Origin: Macrostomum lignano | Lineage: Eukaryota | Reading direction: 5' to 3' | DNA length: 64,000 bases | Assembly (NCBI GenBank): GCA_002269645.1 | Contig: NIVC01001010.1 | Location: 62,001-126,000 of the forward strand | Shown: one piece after another, positions 1 through 21,543 of the stretch | How positions within the stretch are numbered: the first letter of the stretch is position 1 | Layout of the letters: every line of letters begins with the position of its first letter | The notes under the pieces: model-generated | The model's database searches: none | The model's input: only the letters and a program-made list of their open reading frames with translations | Told to the model about the DNA's origin: nothing | Position numbers and translations under genes: made by a program

Positions 1-118
1 TCTTCGTAGCCGCCTTCTCTACACTCGACTCATCGCGAGATGCACACGGTTCGCTGTCGCCAGCGTCAGCATCAGCAGAAGATCCCTCTGCTTGTGGGAT
101 GGTCACGTCGCTGCCCAT
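1..118 (-). CDS. Repeated exon copy 0 (truncated by the window edge) of the chromodomain gene exon array
   Basis: Same sequence as 711-1097; acceptor ttgtgcag|ATG with ATG at 118; continues off the left edge. Confidence 0.55.
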   Translation of the reverse strand, partial: MGSDVTIPQAEGSSADADAGDSEPCASRDESSVEKAATK

Positions 119-164
119 CTGCACAATGATTGATTTTGATGAACTAATGTAAACATATTATGAC

Positions 165-521
165 TCAATGAGGATTCAGCTGGATCCCATGTCTGAAAGT
201 CTGTTTGGCAGTCGGTGCTTGAAGCACCCACAGTCAATGTGAAACATTCAATGAGGGTTTAGCTGGACCCCATGTCTGAAAGTATGTTTGGCAGTCGGTG
301 CTTGAAGCACCCACAGTCAATGTGAACGACAATCAATGAGGGTTTAGCTGGACCCCATGTCTGAAAGTATGTTTGGCAGTCGATGCTTGAAGCACCCACA
401 GGCAATGTGAAACATTCAATGAGGGTTTAGCTGGACCCCATGTCTGAAAGTATGTTTGGCAGTCGATGCTTGAAGCACCCACAGTCAATGTGAAACATTC
501 AATGAGGGTTTAGCTGGACCC
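165..521. repeat. 89-91 bp satellite block (about 4 units)
   Basis: Unit aatgagggtttagctggaccccatgtctgaaagtatgtttggcagtcgRtgcttgaagcacccacagtcaatgtgaaacattc read directly. Confidence 0.95.
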
Positions 522-710
522 GCGACAAATATGCTGAAATTTGATTGATTGTGCTGACTTGGCATACGTCATGATAAAGTTTGCTTTTTTACAATCGAAA
601 CTAAGACATTGAAAGCTGCAGCATATTTTTGGCCCAATAAAAATGATATTCATTAAGTAAAGCGAATGCACTTTTCCAGCGTTAGTGTAACTCAACTCAG
701 CAATGCTCAC

Positions 711-1097
711 CGATTCAAAATGCTGACGCTGTGGGGACGGTTTCCGGTCTTGTATTTTGTTAGCAGATGACGTGATCATGAGATCAGCAGCACTTGAGTC
801 GGATTCCTCAACCATAGCATTCTCCTTCGATGACTGGAGCGCCAAGGTACTAGGAGAGCTCTTCTTGTCTCCAGGATGGTTTTTCCGGGTTTGTCCAGCA
901 GCCGCTGCCTCTTGAGTAGCTCTCGACACCCTGGCCGATGCTGAGAGCTGTTCACGCGACTTATGAACGGAAGTCGTCTTCTTCGTAGCCGCCTTCTCTA
1001 CACTCGACTCATCGCGAGATGCACACGGTTCGCTGTCGCCAGCGTCAGCATCAGCAGAAGATCCCTCTGCTTGTGGGATGGTCACGTCGCTGCCCAT
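711..1097 (-). CDS. Repeated 387-nt phase 0-0 exon copy 1 (MGSDVTIP...QRQHFES, Ser/Ala/Lys-rich low complexity)
   Basis: Acceptor aatcattgtgcag|ATG, donor TCG|GTGAGC, 129 codons open; the 197-aa track ORF is this exon plus intron read-through. Confidence 0.6.
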
Positions 1098-1143
1098 CTG
1101 CACAATGATTGATTTTGATGAACTAATGTAAACATATTATGAC

Positions 1144-1417
1144 TCAATGAGGATTCAGCTGGATCTCATGTCTGAAAGTCTGTTTGGCAGTCGGTGCTTG
1201 AAGCATCCACACTCAATGTGAACGACAATCAATGAGGGTTTAGCTGGACCCCATGTCTGAAAGTATGTTTGGCAGTCGATGCTTGAAGCACCCACAGGCA
1301 ATGTGAAACATTCAATGAGGGTTTAGCTGGACCCCATGTCTGAAAGTATGTTTGGCAGTCGATGCTTGAAGCACCCACAGTCAATGTGAAACATTCAATG
1401 AGGGTTTAGCTGGACCC
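1144..1417. repeat. 89-91 bp satellite block (about 3 units)
   Basis: Same unit as 165-521. Confidence 0.95.
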
Positions 1418-1606
1418 GCGACAAATATGCTGAAATTTGATTGATTGTGCTGACTTGGCATACGTCATGATAAAGTTTGCTTTTTTACAATCGAAACTAA
1501 GACATTGAAAGCTGCAGCATATTTTTGGCCCAATAAAAATGATATTCATTAAGTAAAGCGAATGCACTTTTTCAGCGTTAGTGTAACTCAACTCAGCAAT
1601 GCTCAC

Positions 1607-1993
1607 CGATTCAAAATGCTGACGCTGTGGTGACGGTTTCCGGTCTTGTATTTTGTTAGCAGATGACGTGATCATGAGATCAGCAGCACTTGAGTCGGAT
1701 TCCTCAACCATAGCATTCTCCTTCGATGACTGGAGCGCCAAGGTACTAGGAGAGCTCTTCTTGTCTCCAGGATGGTTTTTCCGGGTTTGTCCAGCAGCCG
1801 CTGCCTCTTGAGTAGCTCTCGACACCCTGGCCGATGCTGAGAGCTGTTCACGCGACTTATGAACGGAAGTCGTCTTCTTCGTAGCCGCCTTCTCTACACT
1901 CGACTCATCGCGAGATGCACACGGTTCGCTGTCGCCAGCGTCAGCATCAGCAGAAGATCCCTCTGCTTGTGGGATGGTCACGTCGCTGCCCAT
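1607..1993 (-). CDS. Repeated 387-nt exon copy 2
   Basis: Identical splice signals; differs from copy 1 by a synonymous TCC/TCA change. Confidence 0.6.
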
Positions 1994-2039
1994 CTGCACA
2001 ATGATTGATTTTGATGAACTAATGTAAACATATTATGAC

Positions 2040-2395
2040 TCAATGAGGATTCAGCTGGATCCCATGTCTGAAAGTCTGTTTGGCAGTCGGTGCTTGAAGC
2101 ATCCACACTCAATGTGAACGACAATCAATGAGGGTTTAGCTGGACCCATGTCTGAAAGTATGTTTGGCAGTCGGTGCTTGAAGCACCCACAGTCAATGTG
2201 AAACATTCAATGAGGGTTTAGCTGGACCCCATGTCTGAAAGTATGTTTGGCAGTCGATGCTTGAAGCACCCACAGGCAATGTGAAACATTCAATGAGGGT
2301 TTAGCTGGACCCCATGTCTGAAAGTATGTTTGGCAGTCGGTGCTTGAAGCACCCACAGTCAATGTGAAACATTCAATGAGGGTTTAGCTGGACCC
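2040..2395. repeat. 89-91 bp satellite block (about 4 units)
   Basis: Same unit as 165-521. Confidence 0.95.
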
Positions 2396-2584
2396 GCGAC
2401 AAATATGCTGAAATTTGATTGATTGTGCTGACTTGGCATACGTCATGATAAAGTTTGCTTTTTTACAATCGAAACTAAGACATTGAAAGCTGCAGCATAT
2501 TTTTGGCCCAATAAAAATGATATTCATTAAGTAAAGCGAATGCACTTTTCCAGCGTTAGTGTAACTCAACTCAGCAATGCTCAC

Positions 2585-2971
2585 CGATTCAAAATGCTGA
2601 CGCTGTGGTGACGGTTTCCGGTCTTGTATTTTGTTAGCAGATGACGTGATCATGAGATCAGCAGCACTTGAGTCGGATTCCTCAACCATAGCATTCTCCT
2701 TCGATGACTGGAGCGCCAAGGTACTAGGAGAGCTCTTCTTGTCTCCAGGATGGTTTTTCCGGGTTTGTCCAGCAGCCGCTGCCTCTTGAGTAGCTCTCGA
2801 CACCCTGGCCGATGCTGAGAGCTGTTCACGCGACTTATGAACGGAAGTCGTCTTCTTCGTAGCCGCCTTCTCTACACTCGACTCATCGCGAGATGCACAC
2901 GGTTTGCTGTCGCCAGCGTCAGCATCAGCAGAAGATCCCTCTGCTTGTGGGATGGTCACGTCGCTGCCCAT
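2585..2971 (-). CDS. Repeated 387-nt exon copy 3
   Basis: Identical splice signals; one E to K change (DSKPC). Confidence 0.6.
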
Positions 2972-3017
2972 CTGCACAATGATTGATTTTGATGAACTAA
3001 TGTAAACATATTATGAC

Positions 3018-3881
3018 TCAATGAGGATTCAGCTGGATCCCATGTCTGAAAGTCTGTTTGGCAGTCGGTGCTTGAAGCATCCATACTCAATGTGAACGAC
3101 AATCAATGAGGGTTTAGCTGGACCCCATGTCTGAAAGTATGTTTGGCAGTCGATGCTTGAAGCACCCACAGGCAATGTGAAACATTCAATGAGGGTTTAG
3201 CTGGACCCCATGTCTGAAAGTATGTTTGGCAGTCGATGCTTGAAGCACCCACAGTCAATGTGAAACATTCAATGAGGGTTTAGCTGGACCCCATGTCTGA
3301 AAGTATGTTTGGCAGTCGGTGCTTGAAGCATCCACACTCAATGTGAACGACAATCAATGAGGGTTTAGCTGGACCCCATGTCTGAAAGTATGTTTGGCAG
3401 TCGGTGCTTGAAGCACCCACAGTCAATGTGAAACATTCAATGAGGGTTTAGCTGGACCCCATGTCTGAAAGTATGTTTGGCAGTCGGTGCTTGAAGCATC
3501 CATACTCAATGTGAACGACAATCAATGAGGGTTTAGCTTGACCCCATGTCTGAAAGTATGTTTGGCAGTCGATGCTTGAAGCACCCACAGTCAATGTGAA
3601 ACATTCAATGAGGGTTTAGCTGGACCCCATGTCTGAAAGTATGTTTGGCAGTCGATGCTTGAAGCACCCACAGTCAATGTGAAACATTCAATGAGGGTTT
3701 AGCTGGACCCCATGTCTGAAAGTATGTTTGGCAGTCGGTGCTTGAGGCACCCACAGTCAATGTGAACGACAATCAATGAGGGTTTAGCTGGACCCCATGT
3801 CTGAAAGTATGTTTGGCAGTCGGTGCTTGAAGCACCCACAGTCAATGTGAACGACATTCAATGAGGGTTTAGCTGGACCCC
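3018..3881. repeat. 89-91 bp satellite block (about 10 units)
   Basis: Same unit; ends at ggacccc|acctc. Confidence 0.95.
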
Positions 3882-3983
3882 ACCTCTCAGATTGGAATGC
3901 TTTCGAATGAAATCGTGCCTTAAGATTCGATTGCGGAATGAAGTGGCATACATCTAAGTAACAGTTAAGTCAGGAGTTCCTAC

Positions 3984-4024
3984 CGTCATCGTTTTCTGCT
4001 GCTCGTTCGGCGGGAAGCATTTTT
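3984..4024 (-). CDS. Chromodomain gene linker micro-exon (EKCFPPNEQQKTMT), phase 1 to phase 0
   Basis: tctaac branch-like motif plus ctctctttc...ttccag acceptor; donor ACG|GTAGGA; restores frame between the chromodomain exon and the repeated exons. Confidence 0.5.
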
Positions 4025-4145
4025 CTGGAATGTTTTGAATTTGGTAGATTTTGAAAGAGAGTTAGATTGTCATTTTTTATCTGACACAAGTTAGACGGTC
4101 AATTATTTAATAAGATTATTACACGTGATGACTAAAAATTCTTAC

Positions 4146-4216
4146 CGCAAGATGAATGCAGACTTTGAATCACACTTGTTGGTATGTTGCTTCGTGGCTC
4201 CCAAGACTTTTGATTG
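4146..4216 (-). CDS. Chromodomain C-terminal half exon (SNQKSWEPRSNIPTSVIQSLHSSC)
   Basis: Acceptor catattttag|, donor TGCG|GTAAGA; SWEPRSNI matches the chromodomain TWEPxxNL motif; phase matches the upstream exon. Confidence 0.75.
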
Positions 4217-4327
4217 CTAAAATATGAAAGCACTGTTTATTAGCCGAACCGATATGGCCGTATGGAAACAACTCTTAGTATATATAATAAATAGAGTGCA
4301 GTGGTGAATAAGTCTTCTGAAACTCAC

Positions 4328-4421
4328 CTTGAATATCCTTTCCACTTTATGTAGAGCTTCTTTTTCGTGCACTTGATAATCCTTTCAACGTAGAAACGCC
4401 TACTAGCTTGGGGCTTTTTTT
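4328..4421 (-). CDS. Chromodomain N-terminal half exon (KKPQASRRFYVERIIKCTKKKLYIKWKGYS)
   Basis: Donor TCAAG|GTGAGT; FYVERII...YIKWKGY matches the chromodomain YxVExI...YLVKWKGY motif. The 5' boundary (gcatgcag|) is less certain. Confidence 0.75.
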
Positions 4422-5559
4422 CTGCATGCTGGCGTGTTAAGGACAACCAGTTGGCAGAACCAACTTGTGAGGCCAACTAATTCAAGTTGAAGTCTTGTTT
4501 GAGGTTGGAAATTGGTCTGTTTTTGTGATTAGGAAGATGTTTACGTTGACCCTCTATTTCAGACCCTCGACCTTGATGATTAAGCCAGCTACAGACCAAT
4601 AAGAGCCCTTCGGAGGGAGAGAGGGAAATGACCAACGTTCAAACGGACGGACAGTAAGGAATGAAAGTTAAACCACCCCATTCTTGACTGTCCGTTTAAG
4701 CACAGGATTGGCTGATGAGCTTTGGGGTTTGCTTGGACCTCAGTCAGGATGGTTCGGCTTTTAAAGTTTCATTATTCAGCCCTATCCTATCGGTTGCCGA
4801 AGCTGTAAACGTTTGAATATAAAGCACACAAACTATTTTAGGAGTCCGTGCTGTAAGCAAGGCTCTTGTCTTTATGTCTCCTTAAATTAAGCAATGCTGC
4901 AAATGCAGCATGAGAAATGCATAGCATGCATAGCCTTCAATCTAGGTTCTCTAAAATCAACACTTGATGAAGCATTTATTCCAAGCATGATAGCGACAGG
5001 AATATTAGTGAACAGTTTTGTTTCAGAAACCACAAGTAATAAATAAAACCATCTCGTGAATTTTTAGTTATTATGGGCTACATCGGAGCTTCGTTTGTAG
5101 CAGAAACTTCAATTTTATTTTACATTCCAATCACTTCGGCCTGTTTAGTAAGCTTGCTTCTGCAACTCAAAAATGCCCCAATGTGCTTAAACACGCATTT
5201 TAAAGAGCTATATCATAAAAAAATAAGTTTTCATACATACAAAACATACACTATGTATGTGTGAAATTTGTCTGTTTTCGGGTTAGGTGGACCTTAGCGA
5301 TGTGGTTTGGGTGGACTGTGTTAAAGGTCCTTGTAAACTAAAATACTCAATACTTAAAATCTAAACTACTTTAAGTAGAGGGACTTTGGCCACAGTAATG
5401 GCTGCCTTTCAGACTATGCAGTCAGTCAAGATAAACCCTCTCTGTACTTCCCATCAAGGAAATTTAAAGTGGTCCACTTAAAGGGTCCATGTAATCGAAA
5501 GGTCCCGCTAACGAGGCTTTTAAACCGACGGAGAGTCTACGCAAACACACATACACTAA

Positions 5560-5560
5560 C

Positions 5561-5629
<69 letters not shown>

Positions 5630-5660
5630 GACAGACAGACAGAGAGACAGACAGACAGAC

Positions 5661-5703
<43 letters not shown>

Positions 5704-5758
5704 GACAGACAGACAGACAGAGAGACAGACAGACAGACAGAGAGACAGACAGACACTA

Positions 5759-5839
<81 letters not shown>

Positions 5840-5868
5840 GGCAGGCAGGCAGACAGACAGACAGACAG

Positions 5869-5919
<51 letters not shown>

Positions 5920-5946
5920 GGGACACTCTGACTGACAGACACTCTA

Positions 5947-6007
<61 letters not shown>

Positions 6008-6044
6008 GAGACAGACAGACAGACAGAGGGACAAACAGACAGAC

Positions 6045-6079
<35 letters not shown>

Positions 6080-6081
6080 GG

Positions 6082-6115
<34 letters not shown>

Positions 6116-6125
6116 GACAGACAGA
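5560..6125. repeat. (ACAG)n/(AGAC)n microsatellite
   Basis: Direct reading. Confidence 0.95.
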
Positions 6126-6305
6126 CTCTCTGTGGCTTGGGGGGGGGGCGGGGTTGGCCCTCATGGCTGTGAATCGAACGACAACTCCAAGCCCCAAATG
6201 CATGTGTTTGCGCACCGAATCGAACCAGGGGCTGTCGTGGGCGTTCACCGCTATCGAAGCTGAGCACTCCGCCCCTTCTTCGAGACACGTTCGTATGAGT
6301 GCCCA
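6126..6305 (-). mobile_element. Possible short dispersed (SINE-like) repeat
   Basis: 24/25-nt identity with 18901-18925 plus scattered downstream matches; B-box-like GGTTCGATTC on the minus strand at 6217-6226; abuts a microsatellite. Confidence 0.3.
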
Positions 6306-6605
6306 ATTTTTGGATTGGAACACATGAGTCTACGACAATCCACCAATCCACGCATCCTTGATACTTTTATACTAGTTTAGCCCTGCTAGCTGTACTCGCC
6401 CATGCGAGAAGAACATTTTTCTTAAGCTCTCTCTCTCCTGTCACAGCTTAGCACTCCGACCTGTGTTTCTCCATGCCTTGTACATGTAAATTCCTCCCCG
6501 TCTTTCCCTTCACTAACAACTCTCTTAGTTTACTATGCATGTAGTTGCATTTTATAAACGGATCCTATAGCCAATAATTTTATAACTCAATACGCCGTGG
6601 GGCCG

Positions 6606-7876
6606 TCACCTCTACTCTCTCTCTCCTCTCTCTCCCCTCACTCTTTACCTCTCTCTCCCTCTCTCTCTCTCCTCTCTCTCCTCTCACTCTTTACCTCTCT
6701 CTCCCTCTCTCTCTCCTCTCTCTCCTCTCACTCTTTACCTCTCTCTCTCCCTCTCTCTCTCCTCTCTCCTCTCTCCCTCTCTCTCCTCTCACTCATTACC
6801 TCTCTCTCTCCCTCTCTCTCTCCTCTCTCCTCTCTCCCTCTCTCTCCTCTCACTCATTACCTCTCTCTCTCCCTCTCTCCTCTCTCTTCCTCTCTCTCCT
6901 CTCACTCTTTACCTCTCTCTCTCCCTCTCTCTCTCCTCTCTCCTCTCTCCCTCTCTCTCCTCTCACTCATTACCTCTCTCTCTCCCTCTCTCCTCTCTCT
7001 TCCTCTCTCTCCTCTCTCTCTTTACCTCTCTCTCTCCCTCTGTCTCTCTCCCTCTCTCTCTCTCCTCTCTCTCCTCTCTCCCTCTCTCCTCTCTCTTCCT
7101 CTCTCTCCTCTCTCTCCCCTCACTCTTTACCTCTCTCTCCCTCTCTCTCTCCTCTCTCTCCTCTCACTCTTTACCTCTCTCTCTCCCTCTCTCTCTCCTC
7201 TCTCTCCTCTCTCCCTCTCTCTCCTCTCACTCATTACCTCTCTCTCTCCCTCTCTCCTCTCTCTTCCTCTCTCTCCTCTCTCTCTTTACCTCTCTCTCTC
7301 CCTCTGTCTCTCTCCCTCTCTCTCTCCTCTCTCTCCTCTCTCCCTCTCTCTCCTCTCACTCATTACCTCTCTCTCCCTCTCTCCTCTCTCTCCCTCTCTC
7401 TCCTCTCTCTCTCTTTACCTCTCTCTCTCTCCCTCTCTCCTCTCTCTCCCTCTCTCTCCTCTCTCTCTTTACCTCCCTCTCTCCCTCTCTCTCTCTCCCT
7501 CTCTCTCCTCTCTCTCTCCTCTCTCTCTCCTCTCTCTCCTCTCTCTCTTCCTCTTTCTCCTCTCTCCCTCTTTCTCCTCTCACTCTTTACCTCTCTCTCT
7601 CTCCCTCTCTCTCCTCTCTCTCCCTCCCTCTCTCTCCTCTCTCTCTCCCTCTCTCTCCTCTCTCTCCCTCTCTCTCCTCTCTCTCTTTACCTCCCTCTCT
7701 CCCTCTCTCTCTCGCTCTCTCTCCTCTCTCTCTCCTCTCTCTCCCTCTCTCCTCTCCCTCTCTCCTCTCTCTCTCCTCTCTCTCTCTCCTCTCTCTCTCC
7801 CTCTCTCTCGTCTCTCTCTATCTCTCCCTCTCTCCCTCTCTCTCTCGCTCTCTCTCCTCTCTCTCCCCCTCTCTCG
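6606..7876. repeat. CT-rich polypyrimidine satellite
   Basis: Degenerate (CT)n with recurring ctcactctttacct/ctcactcattacct motifs. Confidence 0.95.
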
Positions 7877-8451
7877 ATTTAGTTCGTCGATCGCGTCCAG
7901 TCAGAATCGATAGCGCGCAGTCCATCGGGAGTCCGGGCCATGCTATGCATGCTCGCATACGCTTGAATAGTGAAGCTTGAGTTCTGCCTGGCAACGAGGT
8001 GCTGGCTTTGCTCGAGCCTGTCAACTTGAGTTTTTGCGTGGCAATCGGGTCACAGATTCCTGGATTCGATTATCTATATAGCAAATTGAGCTGTGCTCAT
8101 GCGACGCCTCTCTTAATTCTCAATTGCTCTTTCAAAATAGTTGCCGAGGAAGCCGCTAATCTAATTGTGCAGCTGTAACTCATCAATGATGCAGCTGACA
8201 TCTCTTGTTAAACAACTGGGATAGGAGTCACTTTAAGCGTAGGAGTTGAGATTAAAGCAAGGCTATTCTTTAGCTAAATTTTTGAGTCGTGTCAGTTAAT
8301 CCCTTCCTAATGAGCACGGACTGAGAACTTAAGCTAATCAGAAAATATACTGACGCTGGGCCGGCCTCGCTAGTCACCGGACTTTTTCATCTCGGAGCGT
8401 CGTAACTCCTCGTCTCTGCCGATTCTAAGACCCCCCCCAGCATTTTGCCCG

Positions 8452-9027
8452 CTGCTTACCCTCTCCGGCCCTTCATCAGCTGCCAATGCTACCCTCTCCG
8501 GCCCTTCATCAGCTGCCACTGCTACCCTTTCCGGCCCTTCATCAGCTGCCACTGCTACCCTCTCCGGCCCTTCATCAGCTGCCACTGCTACCCTCTCCGG
8601 CCCTTCATCAGCTGCCAATGCTACCCTCTCCGGCCCTTCATCAGCTGCCACTGCTACCCTTTCCGGCCCTTCATCAGCTGCCACTGCTACCCTCTCCGGC
8701 CCTTCATCAGCTGCCACTGCTACCCTCTCCGGCCCTTCATCAGCTGCCACTGCTACCCTCTCCGGCCCTTCATCAGCTGCCACTGCTACCCTCTCCGGCC
8801 CTTCATCAGCTGCCACTGCTACCCTCTCCGGCCCTTCATCAGCTGCCACTGCTACCCTTTCCGGCCCTTCATCAGCTGCCACTGCTACCCTCTCCGGCCC
8901 TTCATCAGCTGCCACTGCTACCCTTTCCGGCCCTTCATCAGCTGCCAATGCTACCCTCTCCGGCCCTTCATCAGCTGCCACTGCTACCCTCTCCGTCCCT
9001 TCATCAGCTGCCACTGCTACCCTCTCC
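8452..9027. repeat. 33-bp minisatellite (about 17 units)
   Basis: Unit ctgccactgctaccctctccggcccttcatcag. Confidence 0.95.
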
Positions 9028-9779
9028 AGTCTTTCTGAAGCAGCTAAAATTGAAAGTAGAAAAAGTTTCAAAGCCGAAAGCAGCAGAAGACAGTGTTTGT
9101 TTCTATTCCGCTAAATTAACAGCGGAAAGCAGCAGCCGAGAGAACTCTCTTGGGCGTCGCACGCAACACAGCAGCACAAGGGGCTCTCTCGTAGAATCCT
9201 CAATTCCTTGACAAGTGCGAGCCTCAGCTGCCTTCATCGGAACTCGATAAATCATTCGACACTTGAGACTTCATTCGGCCATCTCTCCCAGCAGAGATTC
9301 TCTTGCACTGCTCCCTCATCATCTACTTCCTTCCCTTGCTTCACTCCTCCGCTGCCTCGCGCATCGCCATATTTTATTGCCCGCAACCCCCCCCCCGGCT
9401 CCGACTCGCCCCGCCCCGAAGTCATAAATTAGATTCGAGCTCAAGCTGCCATTTCTCCATCCTCCCCTTTACTGGCTGAAACCATAGATGGGAAAACTGA
9501 ATGCACTTTTCCCAGCGACGACCGCCTGCTTTGGGCTCTCTGACTCAATTTCCCTCTGCCATTTCATTACCGCAAGTGAGGACTGTGAGTTATTATCTCC
9601 AAGGCCTGCTAGTCTGCGGTGAGCAATGCGCCCGTAAAACTTTCCGAGAAATAGTTCCGTTCTGTTCTTAGCTGGGAAGCATTGGTTTGAGTTCATAGCG
9701 CGGGACCGGCTGAGATCTGATGAGAGTAGGTGTGAGTAGGTGAGTCTAGGCTGAGTCTGTCTTAAACTGAGGAATTGGG

Positions 9780-10410
9780 AAGGATCTTGGTAGATTGTAA
9801 AGGATCTTGGTAGATTGTGAAGGATCTGGGTAGATTGTAAAGGATCTGAGTATATTGTGAAAGATCTGGGTAGATTGTGAAAGATCTGGGTAGATTGTGA
9901 AGGATCTGGGTAGATTGTGAATTATCTGGGTAGATTGTGAAAGATCTGGGTAGATTGTGAAGGATCTGGATAGATTGTGAATTATCTGGGTAGATTGTGA
10001 AGGATCTGAGTAGATTGTGAAAGATCTGGGCAGATTGTGAAAGTTCTGGGTAGATTGTGAAGGATCTGGGTAGATTGTGAAAGATCTGGGTAGATTGTGA
10101 AGGATCTGGGTAGATTGTGAAGGATCTGAGTAGATTGTGAAAGATCTGGGTATATTGTGAAAGATCTGGGTAGATTGTGAAACATCTGGGTATATTGTGA
10201 AGGATCTGGATAGATTTTGAAGTATCTGGGTAGATTGTGAAGGATCTGAGTAGATTGTGAAAGATCTGGGTAGATTGTGAAAGATCTGGGTAGATTGTGA
10301 AGTATATGGGTAGATTTTAAAGGATCTGGGTAGATTGTGAAGGATCTGGGTAGTTTGTGACGTATCTGGGTAGTTTGTGACGTATCTGGGTATATTGTGA
10401 AGGATCTGGA
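9780..10410. repeat. 20-bp minisatellite
   Basis: Unit gtagattgtgaaRgatctgg. Confidence 0.95.
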
Positions 10411-10721
10411 TCACATTTACTGAATTTACTTCTGCACTGACGGGCTTACCACTCTGTCTTTTCTACTTTCAGTAGCCAGTTTAGTTCAAAACAAGCTTAG
10501 TGCGAAAGTTCGACGATAAGGCAGATGGCAGATGGCCAAGCTCTCAACTAATTTCCCAGCAACTTTTCTTGGGAGAAAATAGCGGACCGCGTCACGCATA
10601 TTGGCGACTAAATTGACCGAACTTTCTCAATCTTTGGCTCTGGATAATTGAAGTGGCGGTGGATGCTGCAGATGACTGATCGGGTGCGGGGTGCGTAGGC
10701 GGCCAGCGTTTGTGCGACGGA

Positions 10722-10804
10722 GTACTAGTATTAGTAATAGTAGTAGTAGTAGTAGTAGTAGTGGTAGTGGTAGTAGTAGTAGTGGTAGTAGTAGTAGTAG
10801 TAGC

Positions 10805-10896
<92 letters not shown>

Positions 10897-10924
10897 TAGT
10901 AGTAGTAGTAGTGGTAGTGGTAGC

Positions 10925-10971
<47 letters not shown>

Positions 10972-10988
10972 TGGTAGTAGTAGTAGTG

Positions 10989-11064
<76 letters not shown>

Positions 11065-11143
11065 TGGTAGCAGTAGTAGTAGTAGTAGTAGTAGTGGTAG
11101 TGGTAGCAGTAGTAGTAGTAGTAGTAGTAGTGGTAGTGGTAGC

Positions 11144-11223
<80 letters not shown>

Positions 11224-11225
11224 TG

Positions 11226-11271
<46 letters not shown>

Positions 11272-11273
11272 TG

Positions 11274-11325
<52 letters not shown>

Positions 11326-11362
11326 TAGTAGTAGTGGTAGTAGTAGTAGTGGTAGTGGTAGC
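10722..11362. repeat. (AGT)n/(GGT) trinucleotide repeat
   Basis: Direct reading. Confidence 0.95.
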
Positions 11363-12029
11363 AGTCCCGGTCGAACAGGTGTGCTCATTCCCGTCCCGCT
11401 AGGTTGTCGGATTCTGATCTGTTTGAGTGCAGCCCACCGATTTATTTTATTTATCCGTCCTCATCACCAGTTTAGCCGCAGCATCCCAGCCCCAGCGCTC
11501 ACTTTCGCCTTCATATCCACCCCGAGTTGGGCAAATTCCGGGAGGTCGATTTGCCTGATTGCATCCGCTGGCCGATGCCCCCCCCCAGCCCACCCGTGGG
11601 ACCCCTATACATTACAGCAGAGTGAAGTAAGCGAGAAGGCCAAGTTGAAGAAAGGGAAAAGGGATAAAAATAGGGGGTGAGTCTAGAACGGGAACAGTTC
11701 CGGACAAAAGTTCGCGCACTTGGAAAAGAAATTCCAATATGCAAGATTATACTTCATCAGCCTCCTGAAGATAAAGCTGTCCAGTCTTCTCTAGTTCTCC
11801 GTCTGTCAACCGTCCGAGCTGTTGAAGGAGACGCTGAAGGCGCTTCACCCAGCAACAGGGCTTGTGCGGTGCGCTCGGCTGCATCTGCAGTGTGGTCGTA
11901 GCGAAATGCACAAAGCCCTGGCCGGAGCGGCTTACTCGTAATCTGACAAAACACGCCCGAGCTTAATGTGACATGCAAAATAGCCTGCTGGTCGCAGCTG
12001 CCATAGACTGCGCTTGGCTGGCCGACTTG

Positions 12030-12205
<176 letters not shown>

Positions 12206-12579
12206 CCGGGCTAATTCCGTGAACACCAGTTCTACGACTCGAGTTCGTCCTTGGAGTCCGCCAATTATCGCTAGCCGGTTAACCAGGAGCTGCTGAAAGG
12301 CGTTTTAAGCCAATTCCGATCAGCCGAGAACCAGTTCTCAGCCATAATTAGAGCCTTCTAACGACTTTTTGAGTCCTTGCACGACGATTTGGTGCCTGTC
12401 CCGTGGGATCAATTTTTATTTCACAAAATTCTTGCCGAGATCCAATTTGTCGCCAGGGATCGCTGACTGGCGGTGGTGCTTCTTTATGGGGTGACTGCGG
12501 CGAAAGTTTTTAAATTAAATTTTCATTTCAAATCTTTTTTATTAGCTGGTTCTTCGGCAGTCTCAGCAAGACTCGCCTC

Positions 12580-13737
12580 TCACCGACACTCACAGACACT
12601 CATAGCAAGTCACCAACACTCACAGAGACTCACCGACACTCACAGAGACTCACAGAGACTCGAAAAAGACTCACCAACGCTCACAGAGACTCACCAACAC
12701 TCACAGAGACTCACCGACACTCACAAAGACTCACAGAGACTCACAAAGACTCACCAACGCTCACAGAGACACACCAACACTCACAGAGACTCACCGACAC
12801 TCACTGAGACTCATCGACACTCACAGAGACTCACCGACACTCACAGAGACTCACCAACACTCACAGAGACTCACCAACACCCACAGAGACTCACCAACAC
12901 CCACAGAGACTCACCAACACTCACAGAGACTCACCAACACCCACAGAGACTCACCAACACTCACAGAGACTCACCAACACTCACTGAGACTCACCGACAC
13001 TCACTGAGACTCACCGACACTCACTGAGACTCACCAACACTCACTGAGACTCACCGACACTCACTGAGACTCACCGACACTCACAGAGACTCACCAACAC
13101 TCACAGAGACTCACCAACACTCACTGAGACTCACCGACACTCACTGAGACTCACCGACACTCACAGAGACTCATCGACACTCACAGAGACTCACCAACAC
13201 TCACTGAGACTCATCGACACTCACAGAGACTTACTGGCACTCACAGAGACTCACCAACACTCACAGAGACTCACCAACACTCACAGAGACTCACCAACAC
13301 TCACAGAGACTCACCAACACTCACAGAGACTCACCAACACTCACAGAGACTCACCAACACTCACAGAGACTCACCAACACTCACAGAGACTCACCAACAC
13401 TCACAGAGACTCACCAACACTCACAGAGACTCATCGACACTCACAGAGACTTACTGGCACTCACAGAGACTCACCAACACTCACAGAGACTCACCAACAC
13501 TCACAGAGACTCACCAACACTCACAGAGACTCACCAACACTCACAGAGACTCACCAACACTCACAGAGACTCACCAACACTCACAGAGACTCACCAACAC
13601 CCACAGAGACTCACCAACACTCACAGAGACTCACCAACACTCACAGAGACTCACCAACACTCACAGAGACTCACCAACACTCACAGAGACTCACCAACAC
13701 TCACAGAGACTCACCAACACTCACAGAGACTTACACA
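12580..13737. repeat. 20-bp minisatellite
   Basis: Unit cactcacagagactcaccaa. Confidence 0.95.
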
Positions 13738-14112
13738 GTCTGGCCTAGTGGTTAACAGGAAAGATGATATTTTCAAGCACGACCTAGCACTTATGATGAA
13801 GGAAGCTGTGTGGAGCCTTGAGAGCCTGTCGCAGATTGTTTGGCCGCAGTTCCTGAGTAGCATTTTAACAAAGCCCGTGATGGACAGGCAAAGGTCTGAG
13901 CAGCAGGAAGCTGCGAGTGCTCGGCTGGAGTGACTGTGAACGAAATGGCTTGATTGGCGGCAGTTTATCACACAGTGGAATGATCGTGGAAAGCAGGTAC
14001 GAAAAGAACTGAAAATGCATCGAATCTGTTCAGGATTTATTGCTTGCAATGTTAGACAGGTAAAGGCAGAGTAACGAAGCGGTGGCAACACTTTCCAGAA
14101 AGATTTAAATGC

Positions 14113-14294
<182 letters not shown>

Positions 14295-14839
14295 AGGCCC
14301 AGCCAGAGAAGCAGCTCCATATGTCCAGCAGGCCTGCATTAGCCAGGGTTATCCCCATTATCTCCATCAGTTGCCCTTGGGCTGGCAGGTAATTGGCGCT
14401 AGCAGACAGTCTGCATGGCTACAGAAAGCAGTCAAATGAAAGAGTTCCTTTGCCAGTGAATTCGTGGGACAGCTAGGGGGTCGTTTTGAATAAAATTAGA
14501 GATCCCCGAGCAATCAGGACTTGCTTGGTCACCCCTGCTGTCCCGGGGCCAGCCGCAGGCGGAGGCGGCAGTGAATGGGAGACCCACCGTGTCTCTGTAT
14601 GATGAAAGACTCGAGCAGAAAGGGGCCCTCGAGTTGGCTTATCCGTCCGGGATCTGAAATTGAAGGTCGAGGATTAACACACTTGGTCTCGCCGTGCACT
14701 TGAGGCTGAAAGACGTGAATAGGGGTTGTTCAATGAAGAGGGAGATAGAGGACTGGGTGGATAGTGGAAACCAGGGATAATGCAGAAATTATTCTTTCAC
14801 AACGAAGAGCAAAAAGTGGGTTAAGTCGAGTTAGAAACG

Positions 14840-15290
14840 GAGAGGTAGGCGAATGGGCGATTGAGAAGTAGAGTGAAGGAGATGGAGAAGTAGGATGGGG
14901 GAGACGGAGGAGTAGAGAGGGGGTAGAGAATTAGAGAGCGAGATTTGAGTAGTAGAGTGAAGTAGACGGAGAATAGAGTGAGGGAGTCAGAGAAGTAGAG
15001 AGACGGAGAAGTAGAGTGGGAGATGGAGAAGTAGTGTGAGGGGATGGAGAAGTAGAGAAAAGTAGAGTGAGGGAGAGATGGAGAAGTAGAGTGAGGGATG
15101 AGGGAGAGATGAAGAAGTAGTGTAAGGGAGAGATGAAGAAGTAGAGTGAGGGAGGGATTGAGAAGTAGAGTGAGGGAGAGATGGAGAAGTAGAGTGAGAT
15201 TGAGAAGTAGAGGTGAAAGAGCTGAGAGACAGAGAAGTAGGGTGGGTAGATAAAAACAGAGGAAGAGACAGAAGTCGAAGAGTAGGGTAA
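14840..15290. repeat. Degenerate purine-rich minisatellite
   Basis: Recurring gagaagtagagtgagggagagatg motif. Confidence 0.8.
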
Positions 15291-15603
15291 GAATTCGAAG
15301 CAAATAGAAGCCAAAAGTGATGGGTAGGGGAAAGCAGTGAGCACGGAGCTCAGCCAGGGAGTGGCCAGAGACTGCTCAAGGGCCTCAGCCTATCCAATCT
15401 GCAGCCAGGAGCTGAAAAAAACAACAGAGAGAAAGCGCATCGGTACAAAAGACGCGACCGGCCCTCCCGCTGCGATTCTCTCCGCTTCTCCGCTGGCCAC
15501 AATATTTCCAAAGGCTTGTTCAATTCGATCAGGAGAAACTGCAAACAGCATCGTAATTAACTGTTAAACCAGCAATCAGTGCAGAAAGCCACCCCAGCCC
15601 GCC

Positions 15604-15708
15604 ATGCCAGCTGCCCGTCTGCAGATTCTTCTATTGGCCGGCTCGATGCTTCTGGCTGCCGCCAGCCTTGCCCAGCTTCTTCCAGGAGCCGAGGCCGCGC
15701 CGCACTCC

Positions 15709-15741
<33 letters not shown>

Positions 15742-15927
15742 GAGCTACTCGAGCGACTCCTCTGCGCCACCGAGGCTGCGCCCTGCCGATGGCCCCGACG
15801 CCTCCAGCCCATCGTCGACGACGACCAGGTTGGCGGCGGCGAGGAGGCGGCGACGGTGAGCGACGGCGTCCCGCTGTTCCGCCGAGGCAAGAAGCAGCCG
15901 CCGAGGAAGCCGCCGGGCATCTGGTGA
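15604..15927 (+). CDS. Candidate secreted peptide / neuropeptide precursor, 107 aa
   Basis: GCCGCCATG start context; hydrophobic N-terminus MPAARLQILLLAGSMLLAAASLA; RR, G-KK and RK processing-like sites; AATAAA at 16033-16038. Confidence 0.6.
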
Positions 15928-16032
15928 AGCAGCGGACCGAGCGGCCGGCCGAGCTCCGCGAATTGACTGAGCACCTGTTTGGACGCAGCCCCTGCCAGCG
16001 CTGACTGTTAGCGCAATGACCCACTGATGGCT

Positions 16033-16038
16033 AATAAA
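16033..16038 (+). promoter_or_regulatory. Putative polyadenylation signal of the peptide-precursor gene
   Basis: AATAAA about 105 nt after the TGA. Confidence 0.45.
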
Positions 16039-16259
16039 TATAAAACCACAGCTAAAATAGCCTGAGAGATCGCTCACCATATTGCTTCTCTTTAATTTGT
16101 TGCTGATGTCTTCGAGTTGCAACTTACTACTGTTGGTAGCTACTAGTGATCTATAAACTAAATATTTGCGCCAGTACTGTACGCAGAGGCAGGCTCTCAT
16201 ACACACGCTCGGGCTCGTGTACAGCGGCCCGGGCTTTCTAATCGTCAGGCATGTACACT

Positions 16260-18890
16260 GTCTGTGCCTTGGTGCTTCCTCAGTAAAGAGAGCCGACGGC
16301 TCGCTCACTGAGAACCCAGGAGAAACACTGGAAGCAATGCTAACAGCGTTTTTCCCGAACGAGCCAGCCAGGCCCGACCCCTTGATCACTCAGTGGTTTC
16401 GGCTGACTCAATCATCACGGAGGACCGCGTCACTAAAGCAGTCTCCTCCTTCAAACCCTTCAAATCCACAGGACCGGACGGCGTTGTGCCAGTCTTCCTG
16501 CGTGAGGCGGTGAAATGCACCGGTTTCCTGCGGAACCTTTGCCGGCTCCTGGAAGCTTGCATTGTACTCGGCTTTGTTCCGAAAACCCTGGACCGAGGCC
16601 AGGGTGGTTTTTATCCCCAAGCCCGGCCGACCGGACTACCGGTCCATTAAATCCTTCAGACCAATCAGCCTCACCTCCTCACTGGTGAAGCTGTTGGAGA
16701 GACTGGTGCTTTGGCGCCTCCTCTCTGTAGAACTGAAGAACAAGCCGCTCAGTGAGAACCAGCACGCCTTTCGGGCAGGCAGGTCCACGGAGAGCGCGCT
16801 TCACGTCTTGGTCGACATGCTGGAGAAAGCCGTTCTTGGTAATGGCTACGCTCTCGCTGTCTTCCTCGACATTGTTGGAGCCTTCGATAATGTCCTCTTT
16901 GAGGCTTTTGACAGAGCTCTACGTGCTAGAGGAACCCACTCGCACCTCACCCGGTGGATCGTGTAAATGATCAGCCACCGCGCACCTGCGGGGCCACCAA
17001 CGGACGGTAACCGTCTGCAAAGGCAGCCGCCAAGGCGGTGTTCTCTCTCCAGTTCTCTGGAACATGGTCATCGATGAGCTCCTTCAGGACAGCCATCTTG
17101 ACCCCATCCTCAAGGTCGGTTACACCGATGACGTCATAGCCATAGCATCCGGACCGTCACCCGAAAGCCTTAGGGATCTTCTGCAAAACTTTATTCGCTC
17201 TGCTGAACAATGGGCGGACAGGTGCGGCCTCAGGCTCTCCGAGACAAAAACTGTCGCGATCATGTTCACCAGCAGGGTCAACTGGCGTATTCGCCCACTA
17301 AAGCTTTACGGGGTGGAAATCCCATCCTTCAAGCGAACCAAGTGTCTCGGCATTACGCTGGACCACCGGCTGAGCTGGTCCACCCACGTCCAGGCCAAAA
17401 CCAAAAAAGCCCTCGCGATTCTTGCGCAGTTGCGCAGAGCCGTCGGCACCACCTGGGGCCTCACCCCGAAGCGACTCTGTTGGATCTATACCGCAATGGT
17501 CCGGCCGGCCGTTACTTACGCCGGCCTGGTCTGGACCTGCGCCTTGCAGATTAAAACATGCCACGAAGCCCTTAAAAAGGTGCAGGGACGCGCGTGCTGC
17601 ATGATTCTGAATGCCCCGCTCTCTGCTCCCTTTGACGGCCTCAACGCCTTTCTCTGCCTCCCGCCTCTGGACATCTTCGTCGGTCGCGAGGCAGCTAAAA
17701 CCACCCGCCGGCTCGTCGAGGCTGGTGTTAACTTCAAGCCACAAAGAGCGATGGCGAAGCGCAAGCTCCTGCCGCACTCTGACCTGTGCCTTAAAGTTCT
17801 GGAGGAGAGTGGGAGTGCGGCTGTCCTTTCGGACGCTGAGCCGCGCTCCCTCAATCTCTACCAACGCTTCAAGGTCACTATCCCCTCTAGGGAGAACGCC
17901 AACGACAGCTGGGCCCCTCAGGAGGTTCACTGCTTCACTGACGGATCCTCCAAAGACGGTTTATCCGGCTTTGGAGTCTGCATCCTTAACGGCCGCGTGA
18001 TCGCCACTCACGCCCAACACACTGGCAGACTCTCCAGCGTCTTCTAGAACGAAGTCCTTGCCATCAGCTCCTGTGCAGCTGAGCTCCACTGCAGGGACTT
18101 CAAAGACAGAAGAATCTTCTTCCACTCTGACAGCCAGGCCGCCTTGCAGGCCCTGTGCCACACCACTACGAACTCCCGAACAGTCCGCGACTGTATCGGG
18201 CAGCTCAACAAGCTGGCTCGGAGAAACACCGTCCGGCTCCTGTGGATCCCAGGACACGCCGGCTTCAAAGGTAACGAGCTCGCCGACTCCCTCGCCAAGG
18301 CGGGTAGCTCCAGCTCGCTCCTTGACCCCGTGCCTCTGGCCCCCATCCCCGCCAGGGTCATTAATCGTCAGATTAACGACTGGGCGGACATCCTGCACTT
18401 GCGCAGATGGGATGGCATTTCCAATGCCGCCAATCCCATGCGGCAGTGCCCAATCCGTCCCTCAAGCAAAAATCTGAATCAAAATCGAAAAGATATCCGC
18501 GCTCTCACTATGGCCTTCACAGGTCACGGTTGCTTTGCCAGGCACTGTTTCCTCCGAAGTGTTCACCGGAGCGAACTCTGCCCTTTCTGCAACCTCGAGA
18601 ACAAAGACGCCAAGCCGAGTCCGGCTCAACCACCTCGGGCCCAACCCGTCCCTGGACGACGCTTGCCGGCCCGAGAACATCCCACGGCTCATCCGGTTCC
18701 TCCGGGCCACCAAGCGAGCCTCCGTCTTTCCCACCGAAGACAACGCTGCAGACAGGACCGGCAGACCTCCCTGACCGGCCCCGCGCCCTAGCCTATGCGG
18801 GACTTTCAGGGATTAGCGGAATGGGCGACGCTCGCCTCCCCGCTGCGTCTTCGGACCGCCCTGCAGCTAAGTCAAGTAAGTCAAGTAAGC
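16260..18890 (+). mobile_element. 5'-truncated, decayed non-LTR retrotransposon (RT + RNase H, LOA/Lian-like)
   Basis: SFKPFKSTGPDG, ARVVFIPKPG, FRPISLTS, QHAFRAGRST, FLDIVGAFD, GVLSPVLWN, YTDD; RNase H FTDGS, SDSQAAL, WIPGHAGFKGNELAD; partial C-terminal Cys/His knuckle; frameshifts near 16390 and 16590, stop/deletion near 16965, TAG at 18045; tail taagtcaagtaagtcaagtaag. The 5' boundary is approximate; no endonuclease is seen. Confidence 0.9.
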
Positions 18891-19329
18891 CTTGGTGCTT
18901 GGTTGGCCATCATGGCTGTGAATCGCGGGTCGTGGGTCGTGGCGCTGAGCTGATGTGCCCAGGTGCTAACGATGCTACTGACTTGAAATTATAAGCAGCA
19001 GCAATTAAGGAATTAAAAGACACAATCAATAAATCAGAATTTCAAGTGCTCAGAATAAAATTGTCCGAAGAGAGCGTATATAGTATATAATAATAATATT
19101 CAGCAGGCTCAAATAAATAGTAACTCGTATAATTCATTTCATAGATTAGATAAATTTATAGTAATTAGCATTGCTTGTGCAGAGTGGCATGCACTTTAGT
19201 TAATGACAGGGTTAGCGCACTAGATTGGTACACAGCAAGTGCCACGACTGAGTGACAGATTTACAACTTAGCATTGGTACAAGGCTGGGGTGCGGCTGAC
19301 ATGCGCAAGTGCGGGGTTTGAAGGGGGTC

Positions 19330-19838
19330 AATAGAGGGGTGAGTGAGGAGTAGATAGAGGGGTGACTGGGGAGTAGATAGAGGGGTGACTGGGGAGTAGA
19401 AAGAGGGGTGACTGGGGAGTAGATAGAGGGGTGACTGGGGAGTAGATAGAGGGGTGAGTGAGGAGTAGATAGAGGGGTGAGTGAGGAGTAGATAGAGGGG
19501 TGAGTGAGGAGTAGATAGAGGGGTGAGTGAGGAGTAGATAGAGGGGTGAGTGAGGAGTAGATAGAGGGGTGAATGGGGAGTAGATAGAGGGTGATTGGGG
19601 AGTAGATAGAGGGGTGATTGGGGAGTAGATAGAGGGGTGAGTGAGGAGTAGATAGAGGGGTGAGTGAGTGGAGAGTAGATAGAGGTGTGACTGGGGAGTA
19701 GATAGAGGAGTGAGTGGAGAGTAGATAGAGGTGTGACTGGGGAGTAGATAGAGGATTGAGTGGAGAGTAGATAGAGGGATGACTGGGGAGTAGATAGAGG
19801 GATGATTGGGGAGTAGATAGAGAGGTGACTGGAGAGTA
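19330..19838. repeat. 23-bp minisatellite
   Basis: Unit gagtagatagaggggtgagtgag. Confidence 0.95.
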
Positions 19839-20334
19839 GGAAGGCAGAGCAAAGGCAAGTGCATACAAGACACTCAACCATGAAGCGGTAATCGATATTT
19901 TTACTTGGAAAATTTCGCATGCAAAGAATGGGTTGATTTTTTAAAAATGATTAGATTGCACTGCAAGAATAACAGGTGCGGGAGCTGAGCTGGTGTCAGT
20001 GCGAGGTCAACGCCAAGAAGTACAAAGTGGGCAGGCGTAGTTAGTTAAATTGTAAATGGAATATTATTAATAAGGTCCAAAGTCGTCACAAATTGTTGAA
20101 AAAAATGATCCAATATCAAAGCGCAGAAACGAGCAAAGCAACAAATTTCAGAAGCGGTCAGTCTGACGTGAATAACAAATCTAGCAAATAATGTCAGTTG
20201 CCGCTAAAGAGCTGAAAACAAATCTGATTGAAATAAAAAATTGCCGGGAAAAACAAAGAGGAAATATTGGGAACAGCCCAAACAACAAATAGCTGAGCAA
20301 GACAGATATATAGGCTTACATCTGAGTCTACGTC

Positions 20335-21290
20335 TACATCATGAGCGCATCATGTCTGCATAGTCAGAATCATGTGTGCATCATGTCTGTATCATGTCTG
20401 CATTGTCTGCATCATGTCTGCATCATGTCAGAATCGTTTTAGCATAACGTCAGAAGCATGTCTGCAGCATATCTGCATCATGTCCGCATTATGTTAGAAT
20501 CATGCGTGCATCATGTCAGAATCCTGTGCATCATGTCAGAATCGTGTGCATCATGTCAGAATCATGCGTGCATCATGTCTGTATCATGTCTGCATTGTCT
20601 GCATCATGTCAGAATCGTTTTAGCATAACGTCAGAAGCATGTCTGCAGCATATCTGCATCATGTCCGCATTATGTTAGAATCATGCGTGCATCATGTCAG
20701 AATCGTGTGCATCATGTCAGAATCATGCGTGCATCATGTCAGAATCGTGTGCATCATGTCAGAATCATGCGTGCATCATGTCAGAATCCTGTGCATCATG
20801 TCAGAATCATGCGTGCATCATGTCAGAATCATGCGTACATCATGTCAGAATCATGCGTGCATCATGTCAGAATCATGCGTGCATCATGTCAGAATCATGT
20901 GTGCATCATGTCAGAATCATGCGTGCATTATGTCAGAATCATGTCAGAATCATGTGTGCATCATGTCAGAATCATGTGTGCATCATGTCAGAATCATGTG
21001 TGCATCATGTCAGAATCATGCGTGCATCATGTCAGAATCATGCGTGCATCATGTCAGAATCATGTGTGCATCATGTCAGAATCATGCGTGCATTATGTCA
21101 GAATCATGTCAGAATCATGTGTGCATCATGTCAGAATCATGCGTGCATCATGTCAGAATCATGTGTGCATCATGTCAGAATCATGTGTGCATCATGTCAG
21201 AATCATGCGTGCATCATGTCAGAATCATGTCAGAATCATGTGTGCATCATGTCAGAATCATGTGTGCATCATGTCAGAATCATGTCTGCA
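20335..21290. repeat. 22-bp minisatellite
   Basis: Unit atcatgtcagaatcatgYgtgc. Confidence 0.95.
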
Positions 21291-21543
21291 TCGTGCTTGA
21301 CTTATCCAGTTTCTCAACCAAACCGCAGTCAGTTCGCGAACGCACGCAATCGAATGAAGTTGCATTTATAGCGAGATTGTCCAAATGACACGTGCAGATT
21401 GGAGATTCATGGGGAAGGGATATAACAAACAACTCCTACTCCTACCCTAAGCACAAAGCCGTTGCACCTTGCCAACAAAGACAAAGACACAAGGACACAA
21501 CAAAGACACAAGGGGAGGATAAAAAAGAAACTAACAAACAAAG

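Follow-up and report, generated by a model that had tools for sequence, protein, structure and literature searches.

Which gene does a chromodomain belong to that is split over three short exons in the genome of the flatworm Macrostomum lignano, and what kind of genetic unit carries this gene? The question arose from a window of contig NIVC01001010.1 (by window the whole analysed stretch of 64,000 nucleotides is meant), where the exons lie on the minus strand between positions 3984 and 4421. The answer proposed here is that they open the gene of a likely tyrosine recombinase, and that this gene, together with its acquired chromodomain, forms a Crypton-like DNA transposon sitting in a (CTGT)n microsatellite; the probability of this whole picture is put at about 0.6. 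Three loci bearing the unit were compared (L001, L002 and L003). L002 is the window's own locus, with window positions 7327..1 matching L002 positions 1..7327 at 100% identity, and it runs on past the left edge of the window. The paralogous loci are on NIVC01000850.1 and NIVC01001364.1 (the latter is L003), both in assembly GCA_002269645.1.

The first-pass annotation had proposed three minus-strand exons of 94, 71 and 41 nt as a spliced chromodomain gene invisible to the list of open reading frames (ORFs). Such a gene is present, and the coordinates, GT-AG ends and phases of its exons are as had been given. Exon 1 (4328..4421, 94 nt, acceptor cag, donor GTGAGT) encodes the first two strands of the domain and the cage residues F, W and Y. 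It is followed by intron 1 (4217..4327, GTGAGT ... TTTTAG), the junction of which is also used in the paralogous protein P0001, and by exon 2 (4146..4216, 71 nt, acceptor ttttag, donor GTAAGA) with the third strand, the WEP motif and the helix. Intron 2 (4025..4145, GTAAGA ... TTCCAG) holds an alternative acceptor near 4080, which would uncouple the domain from the downstream array of repeated exons; the annotated models leave it unused and take 4024 instead. Exon 3 (3984..4024, 41 nt, acceptor ttccag, donor GTAGGA) encodes EKCFPPNEQQKTMT and ends in phase 0, and intron 3 (2972..3983) contains an array of an 83-bp minisatellite at 3018-3882. Joined in frame 2, the three exons give KKPQASRRFYVERIIKCTKKKLYIKWKGYSSNQKSWEPRSNIPTSVIQSLHSSCEKCFPPNEQQKTMT, with phase 0 at the end. 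The exons of the gene, including the repeated ones downstream, have a G+C content of 38-54%, the neighbouring introns one of 28-36%.

An exhaustive search of 1.84 billion representative proteins identified P0001, a protein of 1184 amino acids, with 99% identity to this peptide over residues 4-71. The exhaustive search was needed, as a word-indexed protein search with the chromodomain plus one of the repeated exons had given no match at E 0.001. P0001 and P0208, both of 1184 amino acids and from two other loci of the same genome, hold the peptide with one substitution, and the paralogous loci are about 98% identical to the window across the chromodomain-exon region. P0001 reads MQKKKPQASRRFYVE...QQKTMT followed directly by MGSDVTIPQ..., and thus contains all three predicted junctions including the join of exon 3 to a 387-nt exon. 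The proposed junctions 4328/4216, 4146/4024 and 3984/2971 are identical in the gene models at the two paralogous loci, and the phase-0 join of exon 3 to the repeated exon is used there as had been expected. The sequences numbered NIVC01 represent the M. lignano Mlig_3_7 assembly, which was deposited with gene models built on a genome-guided transcriptome assembly with TransDecoder ORFs (PMC5730564). Independent support for the junctions thus comes from a transcriptome-derived annotation. At the window's own locus, the front end of the gene is unannotated and no annotation lies over the chromodomain exons. The three exons encode the N-terminus of a long gene product, of 1184 amino acids in the paralogous models.

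The identity of the domain was assessed by profile, by alignment and by predicted structure. The peptide matches Pfam Chromo (PF00385) at profile positions 3-41 of 53 with 32 bits and E 1.2e-7, where the gathering score is 25.1 bits, so that the chromodomain assignment of the first-pass annotation is borne out by the profile; P0001 itself scores 29.2 bits. A PDB sequence search with the peptide found the chromodomains of Drosophila HP1, SUV39H1, CBX2/8, CDYL and MPP8. In the best HP1 alignment, which is to a Y24F variant (6asz), F9, W26 and Y29 of the peptide align to Drosophila HP1 positions 24, 45 and 48, those of the aromatic cage residues. By this alignment, all the methyl-lysine cage residues named earlier are in place. 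KWKGY and WEP motifs occur in the peptide, and the loop between strands 1 and 2 is four residues shorter than in Drosophila HP1, a shortening that is also seen in several relatives. An AlphaFold model of the peptide, built on an alignment of 32 relatives, reached a mean predicted local distance difference test (pLDDT) score of 81.6, with 89-95 in the core. It folds into a three-stranded sheet (strands 11-17, 21-26 and 35-38) with a C-terminal helix (44-51), and the best 50 Foldseek matches in the PDB are chromodomains throughout. Among the more identical single-domain relatives inspected, a chromodomain ending a Ty3/gypsy integrase shares about 53% identity, and one UniRef relative from M. lignano carries the name 'Chromo domain-containing protein'. 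It is close to certain that the three exons encode the chromodomain of this gene; chance or an ORF artefact is rejected on the strength of the profile match, the predicted fold and the annotated models, which are identical. With its F/W/Y cage intact, the domain is a predicted methyl-lysine reader, and histone binding would be expected from the sequence.

Behind the chromodomain exons, the minus strand carries an array of cassette exons. Copy 1 (2585..2971) is 387 nt long, encodes 129 amino acids from phase 0 to phase 0, and is bounded by the acceptor cag and the donor GTGAGC. Copies 2 (1607..1993) and 3 (711..1097) are of the same 387 nt, and only the start of copy 4 (1..118) is contained before the window edge cuts it. 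The introns between them (1994..2584, 1098..1606 and 119..710) hold arrays of the 83-bp minisatellite at 2040-2395, 1144-1417 and 165-521, respectively, which vary in length. Beyond the left edge of the window follow five more cassette copies, a 795-nt variant exon and a last exon of 2160 nt. L002 as a whole thus comprises the chromodomain exons, nine 387-nt exons, of which the eighth has a TAG acceptor, the 795-nt variant exon and the 2160-nt last exon. Across the three loci, the number of cassette exons is 3, 10 and 25, which agrees with the earlier proposal that the repeat number is expandable. The 129-amino-acid cassettes are near-identical and of low complexity, and are probably disordered. 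Differences among the cassette copies or among the chromodomain blocks are too few for any inference about selection. A likely way of change is that the array would grow and shrink via unequal exchange, aided by the intronic 83-bp minisatellites.

At L003, a tandem duplication of 6,051 bp (9250-15300 and 15300-21350) was found inside the unit. The duplicated stretch comprises the 5' region along with the chromodomain exons and four cassette exons, so that a second chromodomain block follows four cassette exons, and one L003 pre-mRNA could encode two chromodomains.

The array is not the end of the protein. An architecture of a chromodomain followed by an expandable repeat tail had been proposed for this locus; the link of the domain to the array stands, but the repeats are a linker rather than a tail, as about 985 more residues follow. 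The order in the protein is the chromodomain, a variable number of 129-amino-acid cassettes, two zinc fingers, a module of about 560 amino acids and a short C-terminal helical domain, with the zinc fingers and the module encoded by the 795-nt and 2160-nt exons to the left of the window. For residues 427-984 of P0001, full-length relatives were found, including a second M. lignano protein that is 55% identical. Other relatives, with 27-35% identity over nearly the whole 558-amino-acid query, come from zebrafish and other fishes, gastropods, an isopod, an aphid and beetles, and some clusters of such relatives contain 78-104 near-identical members. In two homologs, P0156 from zebrafish and P0178 from ENA, an N-terminal SET domain takes the place of the chromodomain.

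A full-length alignment of P0001 with 36 animal homologs at 22-30% identity (37 sequences in all) identified conserved positions in the two zinc fingers and in the motifs RRRxGE (R789), RGKRGxxVP (K839), TxxLRK (TSTKLRK; T908 and R911), GH (H937) and xFYR (Y946). R789, K839, R911, H937 and Y946 are conserved in 90-100% of these sequences. Tyrosine recombinases combine a core-binding with a catalytic domain, and their catalytic residues are, in sequence order, Arg, Lys, His-x-x-Arg, His/Trp and Tyr. R911 and H937 are 26 residues apart and H937 and Y946 nine, and both the order of the motifs and this spacing resemble those of lambda integrase. In the AlphaFold model of residues 425-990, the pLDDT lies mostly at 80-97, and against the PDB, Foldseek places tyrosine recombinases (XerA, lambda Int, Cre and IntI) at all of the first nine ranks, with a probability of 0.95-1.00. 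One homolog matches Pfam Phage_integrase at E 7e-4; P0001 gave no Pfam match to either DUF3504 or Phage_integrase, and a viral structure library was uninformative for the recombinase idea. Because the motifs and the predicted fold point to a tyrosine recombinase, the module of about 560 amino acids is likely to be one.

The first-pass annotation had missed that the gene is enclosed in a larger unit; it sits between inverted ends and is flanked by microsatellites in a transposon-like manner. On the 5' side, the terminal inverted repeat TAGTGTATGTGTGTTTGCGTAGAC is located at 5535..5558 on the minus strand, where it occurs as a single copy in the window, and its partner lies at L002 17632-17655, left of the window. 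Together with the reverse complement of TAGTGTATGTGTGGTTACATAGAC, it makes up 24-bp imperfect inverted ends that are complementary at 13/13 and then 8/11 positions (21/24 overall) and identical at L001, L002 and L003. The unit is abutted at its 5' end by an (ACAG)n tract at 5561..6126, which is (CTGT)n on the gene strand (period 4, 143 copies in Tandem Repeats Finder, TRF) and is presumed to be the flank of the insertion site. Between the inverted repeat and the start codon, the 5' non-coding part of the unit (4428..5534, minus strand), presumably a promoter and 5' untranslated region, shares 98% identity with the L001 paralog, beginning at the inverted repeat. The homology between L001 and L002 stops at the microsatellite, and it begins and ends at the same two points. 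All three loci have (CTGT)n on both sides of the unit, and the flanks beyond these microsatellites do not align among the loci. The units measure 8,778 bp, 15,886 bp and about 38.4 kb, and the difference corresponds to the number of cassette exons. At L001, the coding region takes up about 6.6 kb of the 8.8-kb unit and about 1.1 kb is non-coding at each end, which leaves no room for a reverse transcriptase; the chromodomain gene is the only gene of the unit. Present at three or more unrelated sites of the assembly, and with the same ends and unrelated flanks in the three copies compared, the unit looks like a mobile element. When metagenome contigs were scanned for exact matches to its 5' end, none appeared, and for L004, a relative in another species, the unit ends were undefinable from a single copy.

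The most likely way in which such an element would move can be outlined from these features. The recombinase would bind both inverted ends and cut the unit out in circular form, with a CTGT-type spacer between the two facing ends, a typical layout of a recombinase core site. If the circle then exchanged strands with a genomic (CTGT)n tract, the unit would be integrated again with CTGT repeats on both sides. The chromodomain would tether the enzyme to methyl-lysine-marked chromatin, that is to methylated histone tails, in the way proposed for chromoviruses.

Among known systems, Cryptons come closest. They encode a tyrosine recombinase without a reverse transcriptase, carry short direct repeats of 4-6 bp and no inverted terminal repeats, and are modelled as being excised as circles and integrated by recombination with a matching target (PMC3212892, PMC13465315). 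Like them, the unit has a single tyrosine-recombinase-like gene and no reverse transcriptase (if the recombinase assignment is right), direct repeats of a 4-bp unit at both ends that fit recombination with a matching target, and several copies with the same ends at different sites, here at three loci. Accessory domains of Cryptons also vary by lineage (PMC3212892, PMC13465315). Unlike in Cryptons, the flanking repeat is a whole (CTGT)n tract instead of a single repeat of 4-6 bp, the protein lacks the Pfam matches mentioned above, and an N-terminal chromodomain and a cassette array are not among the accessory domains given in PMC3212892 and PMC13465315. A limited literature search brought up no Crypton-type element for which a chromodomain has been described.

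Genes domesticated from Cryptons (WOC/ZMYM2-4, QRICH1, KIAA1958 and KCTD1, with DUF3504) share with this gene a recombinase-derived module with zinc fingers in an animal nuclear-type protein, in which one position of the catalytic tetrad is altered. The M. lignano gene differs from them by the missing DUF3504 match, by the conserved Arg, Lys, Arg, His and Tyr, and by near-identical copies at unrelated sites with defined ends. In chromoviruses of the Ty3/gypsy type, a DNA-inserting enzyme of a mobile element is likewise fused to a chromodomain, and the chromodomain described here is close to one on a gypsy-type integrase, as stated above. According to PMC3605345, the chromodomain is the hallmark of chromoviruses, and PMC3605345 and PMC2832683 propose that it tethers the enzyme to methylated histone tails. 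In contrast to chromoviruses, the enzyme here would be a tyrosine recombinase and not a DDE integrase, the protein contains no reverse transcriptase or rve integrase, the unit has no long terminal repeats (LTRs), and the chromodomain is N-terminal and split by two introns. With HP1, CBX, SUV39H1, CDYL and MPP8 the gene has the chromodomain fold in common, along with a cage that aligns to HP1 and the KWKGY and WEP motifs, whereas the shorter loop, the lack of partner domains and the unrelated rest of the protein set it apart.

Several findings weigh against a Crypton-like transposon with an active recombinase. The position of the histidine in the HxxR motif corresponds in the 37-sequence alignment to the invariant threonine T908, so that the predicted catalysis is not assured, and the catalytic residues were mapped from the order and spacing of the motifs, without superposition. 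The Foldseek matches to recombinases have E values of about 5e-3 to 5e-2, none of which reaches 0.001, and TM-scores of 0.35-0.44; PDB sequence searches with single sequences and profiles, Pfam on the gene and PHROGs returned no recombinase. Mobility rests on three copies, and no empty site, circular junction or polymorphic insertion was found; in principle, misjoins are conceivable in contigs rich in microsatellites. Cryptons are described as having no inverted terminal repeats, in contrast to the 24-bp inverted ends here. RNA-seq reads are unassignable among copies that are 98-99% identical, and the window copy is frameshifted as assembled.

The frameshift concerns the start of the gene. In the paralogs, the coding part of exon 1 opens six bases upstream, at an ATG, which is followed by CAG and by a run of eight adenines (A8) to give MQKKKPQ; both P0001 and P0208 begin with MQKKKPQASRRFYVE. 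The equivalent ATG in the window (4425..4427, minus strand) is one base out of frame, because the homopolymer at 4415..4421 has seven adenines (A7), where the three other chromodomain blocks have A8, and this breaks the frame from the ATG to the chromodomain. Upstream of exon 1, the chromodomain frame runs into a stop without an ATG. The upstream exon that had been suggested at 4545-4607 contains no ATG, and no convincing upstream coding exon was found in its place: among all ATG-to-GT exons of the right phase at positions 4422 to 9000, good donors were absent except within simple repeats. Judged from the paralogous sequences, translation would start at the ATG equivalent to 4427-4425. The cag acceptor at 4422 may be usable as well. 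In UniRef model P0028, ...HFES is joined to KKKPQ, that is a cassette exon to the chromodomain exon, which is in frame only with A8. The genomic sequence just 5' of the A-run (4422-4430, minus strand) is GCATGCAG, and the spliced leader of M. lignano ends in ...TTGCATG. Trans-splicing at 4422 would add an ATG in the same frame as the genomic ATG. As a rescue of the frame, spliced-leader trans-splicing at this site was rejected: the leader ends in ATG, yet the frame again needs A8.

Three other explanations have to be compared with a Crypton-like transposon, the first being a stationary host gene family. An old recombinase-derived gene might have been domesticated to serve as a chromatin protein, have gained a chromodomain by fusion, and then have been copied by polyploidy and segmental duplication in a neopolyploid genome, with the microsatellites marking breakpoints only. 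Extensive duplicated blocks of at least 95% identity have been described in this genome (PMC5730564), the protein cluster comprises just three full copies, the gene is interrupted by introns and included in an annotation derived from a transcriptome, and the HxxR histidine is replaced by threonine throughout the family, as in domesticated inactive Crypton derivatives. The homology of the copies, however, ends at the same bases on both sides, at the inverted repeats, and the flanks are unrelated at 3/3 loci, whereas copies made by polyploidy would have their flanks in common. Relatives of the module are moreover scattered over fish, insects, molluscs, crustaceans and flatworms, with the clusters of 78-104 near-identical members mentioned above, in a transposon-like way. 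A host gene family is considered unlikely. Far less probable still, and close to dismissed, is a stand-alone chromatin reader of the HP1/Polycomb type that consists of a chromodomain and an expandable repeat tail. The nearest chromodomains in the PDB are indeed those of HP1, CBX and SUV39H1, and within the window only repeats follow the chromodomain, but at this locus and in the paralogs the gene runs on into zinc fingers and the recombinase-like module. A Pfam scan of the 1184-amino-acid paralog found Chromo only, with no chromo-shadow, SET, ankyrin or other partner domain of HP1/Polycomb proteins.

A further explanation touches the window copy alone, which might be dead, so that no chromodomain protein would come from this locus; this is a real possibility, although it is rated somewhat below an even chance. 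Besides A7, a second frameshift lies in cassette copy 7 (CC for CCC, L002 9981-10366, left of the window), and the sole coding sequence annotated at L002, P0207, is 5'-partial and begins directly after it. UniRef model P0206 shows the same IHKQR reading as the frameshifted copy 7, with no genomic position on record for it, nor for P0028 and P0151. Among the four chromodomain blocks, only the window copy carries substitutions. On the other hand, both changes are deletions of one base in a homopolymer, in near-identical multi-copy sequence where residual errors of PacBio continuous long reads (CLR) are expected, and no splice site is damaged, nor are the 985 codons at the 3' end. The assembly was made from PacBio CLR data with Canu and polished with short reads by Pilon, and a residual one-base homopolymer error is plausible because multi-copy sequence was assembled from such reads. 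A7 may thus be a true frameshift or an error of PacBio sequencing in a homopolymer. Overall, all parts are present in the window copy, and the two one-base homopolymer deletions either render it inactive or are errors of the PacBio consensus. A Crypton-like transposon remains the preferred explanation of the unit.

Apart from the unit, nearly the whole window (1-64000) consists of tandem repeats, with 98 TRF rows that include dozens of unrelated minisatellites with periods of 11-380 and several tetranucleotide arrays. This load agrees with published work, in which simple and tandem repeats are described as abundant in the M. lignano genome. At 52938-61414 on the plus strand, a sortilin/Vps10-type receptor gene is represented by exons (Pfam Sortilin-Vps10 and Sortilin_C), with minisatellite arrays filling the gaps. 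A remnant of a non-LTR retrotransposon lies at 16562-18791 on the plus strand, where RVT_1 and RNase_H matches are distributed over three ORFs in different frames. A Mos1/mariner-type transposase at 46716-47833 on the minus strand shows HTH_48 followed by Transposase_1/DDE_3 on two overlapping ORFs and is therefore frameshifted. Two more coding segments are on the minus strand, namely a C2H2 zinc-finger segment at 28169-28888, located at the 3' end of an ORF otherwise crossing a 21-bp minisatellite, and an ORF at 30408-31049 without a Pfam match, which adjoins GC-rich triplet repeats. The latter contains FGISSILGD, by eye similar to an engrailed-homology repressor motif, and is possibly the first exon of a transcription-factor gene. 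An Rfam scan of the window gave no match, and neither further chromodomain copies nor self-similarity were found within it.

The exon array with 3, 10 and 25 copies in one gene offers a clear case of coding copy-number change, probably driven by intronic minisatellites. The locus also holds a lesson for annotation, as a single difference in a homopolymer of the long-read assembly was enough to conceal the three opening exons of the gene here. Taken further, the findings tentatively suggest an undescribed group of animal DNA transposons, driven by a tyrosine recombinase, with inverted arms around a microsatellite crossover, in which insertion into (CTGT)n would be steered by chromatin, an in-frame exon array would expand and contract, and chromatin modules would have been gained repeatedly (a chromodomain in the flatworm, SET in zebrafish); this wider claim is held with less confidence than the transposon itself.

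That a mobile element can read chromatin to find its landing site is textbook knowledge from the chromodomains of retrotransposon integrases. If the proposed reading is true, a chromodomain on a tyrosine recombinase would represent the same solution in a different class of elements and provide a second system in which to test it; working transgenesis exists in M. lignano. Crossing over at a common microsatellite, as the element appears to do, would account for its finding many targets, and could be of practical interest as an integration tool. Insertion steered by the chromatin state would then parallel chromoviruses in a different transposon class.

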